DNA of 32,000 bases from Wallemia ichthyophaga EXF-994 (taxonomy: Eukaryota; Fungi; Basidiomycota). A program made the position numbers and the translations under genes. Shown here one piece after another: positions 1 to 2,889 of the stretch. Numbering within the stretch: the stretch's first letter is position 1; every line of letters starts with the position of its first letter. The notes under the pieces are model-generated. The model was not told the origin of the DNA. It ran no database searches and worked only from the letters and a program-made list of their open reading frames with translations. The DNA is taken from assembly GCF_000400465.1 (NCBI RefSeq), contig NW_008806276.1, positions 330,001 to 362,000 of the forward strand, written 5' to 3'.

Positions 1-2
1 TG

Positions 3-470
3 TTCTCTAACGGCCTGGTATAATCCTACATGAGTATTAAGCTCATTTATGGGCTCGCAGAGCCTATTGTACGTGTTTGGGGCCGCTTCAATCCATTTTA
101 CATCATGGTGAACGTTCCTCGTGAGCTCAGCTAAATCAATCACTACACGTAATCCATAACATAAGCGATCGAGGTTCTTGACGATCTTGCGCATCTCTGA
201 GACGTCATTTGAGGGTGCATTGACGATTCTGTCGATCAATGATGCAACTGAACGACATCAACGCCGCCAAAGCTAGCGTATCCCTGAATGTTGGTTATAG
301 CGGAGAAATGCCTAGAGTAGAACCAGCGAACCTCATTCCGAGACAATGCCTAAAATGTGGAAAGTTGAGACACACAAAGTATGCAGATCACCACCTCCGT
401 TGCCTGAGATGCGCGGAGAAACACGAGACAGCAAATTGTATAAAATAACCATGTGCAAACTCACTGTCTT
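3..470 (+). mobile_element. Degenerate non-LTR (LINE, Tad/Jockey-like) retrotransposon ORF1/gag relic
   Basis: ORF 239-448 reads PRQCLKCGKLRH...LRCLRCAEKHETANC and continues past an in-frame TAA as PCAN. This matches the spacing of the three tandem CCHC knuckles of LINE ORF1 (QCxxCxxxxH; CxxCxxxHxxxxC; CxNC), with some ligands lost. The upstream frames are broken by stops and no ORF2 is recognisable. Confidence 0.5.
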
Positions 471-1481
471 CAATAATACCAGGCTATACGAGTAATATTT
501 CTTTTTCTTGCTTGAACAAAAATTTGTTTCGAATGGCAGCTTTCTCTGATTGAATGTTGAGTCAGAGCTCGGTATCCTGATTCAATTTTACAGATTTTAT
601 TTGTTTAATGTTGACTTTGAAGCAGACTAATGCTGTTCACGTTTTGCTGCTTATATATCGCGCCATCTTTACTGCGTTCTCTTTTTCGATGTACGCAAAT
701 AAAACAATCTATGACGTTTTTGCGGTAATGAATTATCATAATATTGCATAGTGCTTAATTTGTTTGAGAATAAAGTATTGTCAAAGTTGTCACCGAAGGG
801 TAAGTCTTCTACATCGGATAATTTGTCTATAACTGTAAATTGATTTTTTGTATCACTCATTTAACAATTTGCCTCAATCTAATGGAAGCATTTATGATAG
901 TGTTTTTATATCAATTTTGATTTTGACTTTTGCAGAATGTTCCACATTTTCGGATCATGGATCAGGACCAACTTCTTACACTTCCGTCCAATTTTTAGCC
1001 ATCTTACCCGTCATGTTCGAAAACATGAGAACGTATCGGGGCTTTGGCTATGGCGGGAAACATACGTTGGTTCGTTGGTTGAGGAGCTTTGTTTGGTGAA
1101 ACGTCAGCGTCAATATCCGTTATAAGTTGTAGTGTTATTTTCTACTTTGCCCTTCATGCAGATTATTATTTCAGGTTGATCATTCTGCTGTCCTATAATT
1201 TCATGTTGAGTTTAAATGATCGCCAGACAAGTCACATGCTAAATGCCTCCTTTATTGGAAGTAATAGAAACCAAGTTAAATAGCACGTCGTCTTGTTACG
1301 CACTTTGCGTGTAATGAGTATGCCAACATTTTACGAATGCACAATGTCACTGATTGAATTCGGTTATATTGAGTACTTCTTGTGGAATGATGATTACTAT
1401 TAATTATAATTCAGTTAAAAAAGTTTCTAAATATCACACTTCAATTCAAGATAGGGCAAATTTACAAATTTACAAGAAAAA

Positions 1482-2889
1482 TCAAGTGCTAGCTCTTTCA
1501 ATTTGACCGCCATGTAGAGTTATAAATTTGATTTCCAAATAAGCAGCCAAATCTGTCAATGGTTTGTAATACTTCAATGAAGACCATGGAAAGAGAAGAC
1601 CGTTCTCATTCGAAATGGCATCAAAGTCACTGGAAATAGTAAGAGGCCGCCTTTGACTATATGATTGATTAACTCACGATTCCATATCCTTTCTCAATTG
1701 AACGAAATATTTCGTTTCATCAGTAATAATACCATCAACTCCCCACTGATTGGCAGAGTTAACAAATCCCATATTCAATCTTTCACTCACTTTAGAAGCC
1801 TCGACCATTTCGGAACGATTATTGACAGTCCAAACCATTACACCTTTATGTGATTCTTTGCACTGTTTAAGAAATGCTTGACCGTCGCTACTGATTAATG
1901 AGCTAAATGACATACTCAAGACCTTGACATGATCCTTGAATTCGATGAGAAGATGTCTAAGCTGGAAAAATGACGCTTACGAAGAAGTGAGATCGAGCGA
2001 GTGATGTGCTCATACCAATATGAGCTAAGTGAGCATATGGAATAATGTTTTTTGCAGGCTCTATGAACTTTGGATGCCAGAGACCTAAGTTTGATGAATA
2101 AGTAAAAAAAAAGTGTAATCAAAACCAACCAAGTATAAGGCGTGGTGCTAATCTATTTTCGTAGTCGGTATACTTTGAGATGGATTTGTGCATGATACTA
2201 AATAATCTTTCCGGTGGATTGTTTGGTTTAATATCAATCTAAAACAGATATGAGTGATGCAATAATTGAGTGATAAACTCACGTTAAATTTGACATGATT
2301 GTTTTCGGGCTTCATGAGTAGCTCTAAGGCTTCATCGAATTTAGGAATTGGTTGAGCGGGTTGTTGGAGAGTACGTAAGTGTTCAATGTCACCAACGTAA
2401 GGTTTCGAAGGGATACTACCGGATCCATCAGTTAGACGATCTAATTCAGGATCATGAAACATAACAATGACATCGTCAGCACTACAAGAGTAGCGTTAAT
2501 TGAGGAGTTGAAAGGTATGAATGAAAAAATACCAAATGTGTACGTCTGTGAGATAGAACCTTGATAAATGAAGCTTCCAAGGTAAGAAATATGACGTACC
2601 ACTTTCGATTCCTTCGGATCCGTCTCTATAAAGGAATTGAAATTTATTACGTCCTTTGAATGATAAGATAGGTACTAACTTTATTGCACCTCTAAAAGCC
2701 GCCATTGTATTTTCAGGATATCCAGCACTAGCCTAAAGATAAAGCATTAAAGTGGATAGCGAAGCGTTTCGATAGACATTCCCCTCTATGACCGAAACTA
2801 GATGATATTAGCTCGAAGTTGATGACATATATAGCAACTAACCAGGATGGGAAATTGTCAATGTTATTGTGTTGTGAGATTGTATTCAT
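1482..2889 (-). CDS. Glycerophosphodiester phosphodiesterase (GDPD) family, Pgc1-like phosphatidylglycerol phospholipase C; 11 exons
   Basis: The spliced reading gives MNTISQHNNIDNFPSC-FGHRG-ASAGYPENTMAAF...GIESDVH...IVMFHDPELDR...IDIKP...VMVWTVN...WGVDGIITD. These are the canonical GDPD motifs. Stop TGA is at 1482-1484. Nine introns are GT-AG and one is apparently GA-AG (2733-2781). Confidence 0.9.

Follow-up and report, generated by a model that had tools for sequence, protein, structure and literature searches.

GC-AG introns make up about 1-2% of fungal introns. An A at position +2 of the donor is normally a severe splice-site lesion, which usually impairs the second catalytic step of splicing. 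Introns with GA-AG termini are a known rare class in fungi, as the first-pass annotation of the DNA studied here had stated (PMC11590231; PMC3577648). In the basidiomycete Ganoderma lingzhi, a manually curated annotation contains 35 GA-AG introns, or 0.038% (PMC11590231). [quoted passage not shown] A cross-kingdom survey found raised numbers of GA-AG introns in two animals (PMC7072748). According to the summary given in that survey, the 'dead-end' GA 5' splice site of human FGFR1-3 is used efficiently by the major spliceosome (Brackenridge et al. 2003, summarised in PMC7072748). In intron 12 of Trema orientalis SYMRK, a conserved GC donor changed to GA; this allele was shown to be fully functional, and it was proposed that GC is the ancestral stepping stone (PMC10668435). 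The Wallemia genome has 11,786 annotated introns (PMC3849046), and if GA-AG were as frequent as in Ganoderma, a handful of such introns per Wallemia genome would be predicted.

Here we analyzed one such intron in a PGC1-like GDPD gene of Wallemia ichthyophaga EXF-994. The window, which is the whole 32,000-nt stretch of DNA that was analyzed, is identical to scaffold KE007226.1, and the gene lies on its minus strand. All 11 exons and the nine other introns of the gene are intact. Its features are the following:

1482..2889, minus strand, complete coding sequence of the PGC1-like GDPD gene, with 11 exons and 10 introns of 44-54 nt, 308 aa
2889-2843, minus strand, exon 1, carrying the initiator ATG (2889-2887) and a weakly conserved N-terminal tail
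2842-2798, minus strand, intron 1, 45 nt, canonical GTTAGT...TCTAG, position identical in W. hederae and W. mellicola
2797-2782, minus strand, micro-exon 2, 16 nt, encoding (C)FGHRG with the catalytic His-Arg
2781-2733, minus strand, intron 2, 49 nt, GAATGT...CTTTAG (GA-AG), phase 0, between GHRG and ASAGYPENT
2776..2781, minus strand, donor hexamer GAATGT of intron 2, with the non-canonical A (+2) at 2780
2746..2750, minus strand, TTAAT, possible branch-site region, about 14 nt before the 3' AG
2732-2680, minus strand, exon 3, 53 nt, encoding ASAGYPENTMAAFRGAIK
2728..2730, minus strand, TAG stop met when intron 2 is retained, from frame translation
2625-2600, minus strand, exon 4, 26 nt
2545-2533, minus strand, micro-exon 5, 13 nt, encoding part of DVHIC
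2481-2283, minus strand, exon 6 of the 11-exon model
2238-2130, minus strand, exon 7 of the 11-exon model
2084-1981, minus strand, exon 8 of the 11-exon model
1934-1791, minus strand, exon 9 of the 11-exon model
1745-1678, minus strand, exon 10 of the 11-exon model
1629-1482, minus strand, exon 11 of the 11-exon model

On the minus strand, the sequence around intron 2 runs from ...TAG to the micro-exon TTTCGGTCATAGAGGG, then through the intron, GAATGTCTATCG...CTTTATCTTTAG, into exon 3, which begins with GCTAGTGCTGGATATCCTGAAAATACA. One question is whether this reading is forced or whether another pair of splice sites can give the same protein. We enumerated all removals of 30 nt or more that fall within the segment spanned by exons 2 and 3, keep the phase and leave no stop. 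Among these, GA(2781)-AG(2733) is the only removal with an AG acceptor that keeps both GHRG and ASAGYPENT (GHRGASAGYPENT). Four in-frame pairs have GT-AG or GC-AG termini, namely GT2792-AG2690, GT2777-AG2690, GC2765-AG2690 and GC2732-AG2690, and each of them deletes HRG and/or PENT. When the intron is read through, the translation continues as GHRGECLSKRFAIHFNALSLG and ends at the TAG. The anatomy that the first-pass annotation had proposed is thus established at the level of the DNA: the 49-nt GA-AG intron is borne out by sequence reading and enumeration with exact coordinates, the enumerated removals contain no canonical alternative that keeps both motifs, the read-through does meet a TAG (2730-2728), and the adjacent 16-nt exon does encode the catalytic His/Arg. 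The remark that positions +3 to +6 (ATGT) fit the local donors also holds, with G at +5 in 25 and T at +6 in 21 of 27 donors.

Other ways to read the region were rejected. Skipping of exon 2 shifts the frame and meets a TAA. Sliding the boundary by one nucleotide in either direction leaves the mRNA unchanged and results in the termini GG..TA or AA..GG, so that only GA..AG has an AG acceptor. A U12-type intron does not fit, as the donor is GAATGTCT compared with the consensus RTATCCTT and no branch site like TCCTTAAC is present. The GC-AG class does not apply to W. ichthyophaga intron 2, where +2 is A and not C. In its other features the intron resembles its neighbors: its length of 49 nt compares with 43-55 nt in the other 29 introns of the three Wallemia genes, and its 3' end has a pyrimidine-rich stretch followed by TAG. 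At the place of the branch-like TTAAT motif, the sequence is CTAAC in W. mellicola and CTGAC/TTAAC in W. hederae.

Since so much depends on one base, it can be argued that the A at 2780 arose in sequencing or assembly and that the donor is in truth GT or GC. The donor GAATGT is identical in four W. ichthyophaga assemblies (the reference and the strain assemblies L008, L009 and L010). For the population genomes, EXF-994 served as the guide in assembly (PMC6738226), which speaks for an error; yet these guided assemblies show their own SNPs and indels in the gene, including 2767 A>C inside intron 2 itself (L010). GAATGT is also read in the reference-free Logan assemblies SRR25393947 and SRR25394091, whose contigs, found by a look-up of the read-through ORF that starts at Met60, span the site and carry strain-specific SNPs. 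The genomic base, which the first-pass annotation had wanted checked against raw data, is therefore A in three other strains and in two reference-free assemblies. For practical purposes an assembly error is effectively refuted, and we give it a negligible probability. The A at +2 is real, and it appears fixed in W. ichthyophaga, being present in all six sequences seen. Genomic DNA of W. ichthyophaga is present in five public runs (SRR25393947, SRR25394091, SRR25394048, SRR25394065 and SRR25393958), which show at least two haplotypes at this locus.

Removal of the intron gives a 308-aa product with a full GDPD domain. It matches the Pfam GDPD family (PF03009) with E=7e-36 and a score of 125 bits (gathering cut-off 23.6); the match takes in profile positions 1-242 of 244 and begins at residue 19 in the HRG motif. 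GHRG, YPENT, IESDVH and FHDP in this product correspond to the HRG, PENT, E-x-D-x-H and HD motifs when it is aligned to 2pz0 and other solved GDPDs. For solved GDPD structures in the PDB, the best alignment is with residues 16-78, the stretch that exons 2-6 encode. The product is colinear with its basidiomycete orthologues (CWGHRGASAAFPENT...), and its C-terminal 250 aa are 100% identical to W. ichthyophaga EXF-994 EOR03663.1.

Public models of the gene are mostly wrong at the 5' end. The NCBI model EOR03663.1/XP_009266699.1 (250 aa) begins at Met60 (ATG 2462-2460) and has none of the N-terminal catalytic motifs HRG, PENT, E-x-D-x-H and HD. The MAKER models from the W. ichthyophaga population genomes have 281 aa and also retain parts of introns 8-10. 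The W. hederae model TIA89367.1 has an invented N-terminus, and for most W. mellicola strains two separate entries stand for this one gene, a 75-aa 'hypothetical protein' and a 264-aa protein. The sole correct public model is the JGI XP_006957296.1 (W. mellicola CBS 633.66, 307 aa). The truncated models are an artefact of gene predictors, which reject the GA or GC donor and overlook the 16-nt and 13-nt exons; the same truncation is seen in W. mellicola, whose JGI model is full length. The practical outcome of this work is a corrected Wallemia gene model with its catalytic N-terminus restored. With the present models, comparative counts of "active" GDPD enzymes, or of domain gain and loss in Wallemia, would be wrong.

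Another question that is raised by the GA donor is how it arose. All 10 intron positions are common to W. ichthyophaga, W. hederae and W. mellicola, in which the proteins have 308, 310 and 307 aa, respectively. Intron 2 is the only non-GT intron in the three Wallemia genes, with GA in W. ichthyophaga and GC in both W. hederae (GCACGT) and W. mellicola (GCATGT); a Logan contig from a W. mellicola-like sample likewise has a GC donor at intron 2. Our W. mellicola reconstruction is identical to the 307-aa JGI model, which means that an independent annotation uses the same GC-AG intron and the same micro-exons. Outside Wallemia, a phase-0 intron directly after GHRG is found with a GT donor in Dacryopinax (GTGTGT), Psilocybe (GTTCGT) and Phakopsora (GTAAGC). 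In total, five other basidiomycetes, that is the two other Wallemia species and these three, have the orthologous intron at the same position. The comparison of donors among orthologues, which had been suggested with the original observation, thus gave GC in the two other Wallemia species and GT outside the genus.

Protein distances place W. mellicola outside the other two species, with a dN of 0.087 between W. ichthyophaga and W. hederae and of 0.145 and 0.147 from these to W. mellicola. Together with the donor states, this leads by parsimony to a change from GT to GC in the Wallemia ancestor, followed by C to A on the W. ichthyophaga branch. From this comparison, intron 2 is ancient and its donor is likely to have followed the path GT to GC to GA, so that the GA donor derives from a donor that was already non-canonical. 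The small exons of the gene can also be followed among species. The positions of the 16-nt, 13-nt (2533-2545) and 26-nt (2600-2625) exons are kept in the three Wallemia species; in Psilocybe, GHRG lies on a 20-nt exon whose upstream intron is 4 nt off the Wallemia position, and in Dacryopinax and Phakopsora there is no intron at the place of Wallemia intron 1.

An alternative that has to be weighed is that the C to A change killed the splicing of intron 2. The gene would then be a young pseudogene, or only the 250-aa protein initiated at Met60 would be made. Such an outcome is what one would normally expect from an A at +2. The public model EOR03663.1 does begin at Met60, and no transcript contradicts the loss of splicing. 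Evidence on the other side comes from the way in which the gene has evolved. Synonymous sites are saturated among the three Wallemia species (pS ~0.8), and for this reason we used counts of synonymous and nonsynonymous changes and not dN/dS ratios. Within the catalytic core of 43 codons (CFGHRG...DDVIV), 22 synonymous and 0 nonsynonymous changes separate W. ichthyophaga from W. hederae, and the changes specific to the W. ichthyophaga branch are seven synonymous and 0 nonsynonymous. Exon 3 aligned with that of W. hederae shows nine synonymous and 0 nonsynonymous differences, and micro-exon 2 is conserved in W. mellicola with synonymous changes (Arg AGA compared with CGC). Over the whole gene, 43 synonymous and eight nonsynonymous changes are specific to the W. 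ichthyophaga branch. Since there are about 3.6 times as many nonsynonymous as synonymous sites, this ratio means strong purifying selection along the branch.

Variation within the species has the same bias. Among four W. ichthyophaga strains all five exonic SNPs are synonymous, compared with seven variants in 481 nt of intron, a sequence about half as long as the exon sequence compared. As GA is common to all strains, this polymorphism is later than the change to GA. A processed or decaying pseudogene was rejected, as the exons and the other introns are undamaged and the changes are strongly biased to synonymous ones in either kind of comparison, among species and among strains. In W. ichthyophaga the gene evolves under purifying selection, and this selection is seen on both exons that flank the GA-AG intron. 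Exons 2-5 and their flanking splice sites have been preserved. A protein that starts at Met60 would be without HRG, PENT and ESDVH, where the fold is best conserved, and the constraint found elsewhere in the gene would then be hard to explain; together with the whole-gene constraint, this argues that the full-length mRNA is made. The Met60 start of the public model itself has a simpler origin, as predictors truncate the gene in W. mellicola as well. Only one of the five within-species exonic SNPs lies upstream of Met60, where exons 1-5 have 155 nt, and marks of a very recent loss of splicing are therefore not to be expected yet. Taking these points together, we consider the loss of splicing quite unlikely. 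The sequence constraint argues for productive splicing of intron 2 and not specifically for its regulation.

Searches for the spliced product itself gave the following results. Among read-assembly proteins, a search with the full-length protein yielded no spliced product from Wallemia, and a search with the N-terminal 87 aa returned only the wrongly modelled W. mellicola protein of 75 aa and an ORF in genomic Logan sequence. Two degenerate spliced-junction patterns had no match in JGI metagenome and metatranscriptome contigs, and the GDPD gene is absent from the supplements of the W. ichthyophaga transcriptome paper. The TopHat version with which the existing W. ichthyophaga RNA-seq (Zajc et al. 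2013) was originally processed is not known to accept junctions other than GT-AG, GC-AG and AT-AC. Rfam and ARAGORN gave no RNA genes in the window. Based on the purifying selection on the gene, the GA intron is very probably spliced in W. ichthyophaga.

How efficiently it would be spliced is a separate matter. When +1/+2 are left aside, the intron 2 donor has a lower score than any of the 27 canonical donors in the three orthologous genes, with a PWM built from these 27 sites and scored against themselves, a small sample. With the same small and self-scored sample, the intron 2 donor is the lowest-scoring of the gene in all three Wallemia species. In the species with GC, the flanks are GGG|GCAYGT, with no compensating consensus. 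The low score comes mainly from the exon bases, which are held at GGG by a Gly codon. Inefficient or regulated splicing would agree with such a weak donor, but the score does not demonstrate either.

One possible option, close to the splicing-efficiency control raised in the first-pass annotation, is that the GA donor splices inefficiently or only under some conditions, so that inclusion of the micro-exon and avoidance of the TAG tune the enzyme level, for example with salinity. The weak context fits this, as do the non-GT donor in all three Wallemia species and the premature stop that follows from retention of intron 2. Intron retention is also the main mode of alternative splicing in W. ichthyophaga, where about half of the events occur at only one of two limiting salinities (PMC3849046). 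Yet the PWM result has the limits given above, a non-GT donor that lasts in three related lineages can be simple inheritance, and in Trema SYMRK the same GC to GA change had no functional effect (PMC10668435). We therefore regard this option as unlikely. It refines the reading of a functional GA-AG intron and does not exclude it. An even more speculative form, which we consider improbable, is that the change from GC to GA itself made an already weak donor conditional, so that removal of intron 2, and hence production of an active phosphatidylglycerol-degrading enzyme in place of a transcript that stops prematurely, responds to salinity or to the state of the spliceosome. If this were true, membrane-lipid turnover would be tied to splicing in the most halophilic fungus known.

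The mechanism that probably fits the data best is that of a real U2-type spliceosomal intron with a GA 5' end in a PGC1-like GDPD gene, ancient in origin, changed from GT to GC to GA, and spliced to give the full-length enzyme. The intron splits GHRG|AS at phase 0 throughout Basidiomycota, with a donor that was originally GT. In the Wallemia lineage the donor became GC, and on the W. ichthyophaga branch the C at +2 changed to A and became fixed. Being short like its neighbors, the 49-nt intron is probably recognized by intron definition, for which the G at +1, A at +3, G at +5 and T at +6, together with the short length and the normal 3' end, presumably suffice. Splicing would then join the 16-nt exon with the catalytic His/Arg to exon 3 and lead to the 308-aa enzyme. 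The use of the GA junction in RNA and its efficiency are inferred.

The DNA next to the gene has features of its own. Directly downstream, the EXF-994 scaffold has about 7.7 kb without an annotated gene or an ORF of at least 120 aa (window 1-1481 and beyond; L011 10981-18658). The GC content of this stretch lies mainly at 32-37% and comes near 44% in three 500-bp windows, compared with a published genome mean of about 45%. In W. ichthyophaga, W. hederae and W. mellicola alike, every short-read contig ends 0.2-0.7 kb past the gene; in each of these species the stretch resists assembly, and it may be rich in repeats or resemble a centromere.

Comparison with the described systems shows what is shared and what differs. 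The GA-AG introns in the fungal catalogues are of the same dinucleotide class and are also short, but they are entries without an evolutionary history, whereas for Wallemia intron 2 the likely path from GT to GC to GA and the selective constraint are documented. The Wallemia intron belongs to this known rare class and is a well-documented addition to it, of modest interest to splicing specialists. Typical GC-AG introns have the state that is seen in W. mellicola and W. hederae intron 2, and W. ichthyophaga differs from them by the A at +2. As summarised in PMC7072748, the FGFR GA site depends on a canonical GT 6 nt upstream; in W. ichthyophaga the first GT in the upstream direction lies 11 nt off, at 2792, and an arrangement like that of FGFR is absent. 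On the side of the protein, the Wallemia product shares with S. cerevisiae Pgc1 and the GDPD family (PF03009) the full domain with the HRG, PENT, E-x-D-x-H and HD motifs. Its orthology to Pgc1 rests on the names given in the source databases, where the fungal orthologues are called "PGC1-like", and its substrate specificity is a prediction.

The closest parallel is SYMRK. In both cases the relatives have GC and one species has GA by a single substitution at +2, the gene appears functional, and the change first looked like a pseudogenising lesion. They differ in that SYMRK is a plant receptor kinase whose function was shown by RNA and complementation, whereas splicing in Wallemia is inferred, and in that the SYMRK GA allele is still spreading within its species, whereas the Wallemia GA appears fixed in the six W. 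ichthyophaga sequences. The Wallemia intron offers a small and tractable substrate for asking how the fungal spliceosome tolerates an A at +2. It also gives a clean and datable natural example from fungi of a probable passage from GT to GC to GA at one ancient intron, in a gene that is still under selection. This path parallels that of plant SYMRK, the only experimentally proven case, and it supports the idea that GC donors can serve as a stepping stone to GA.
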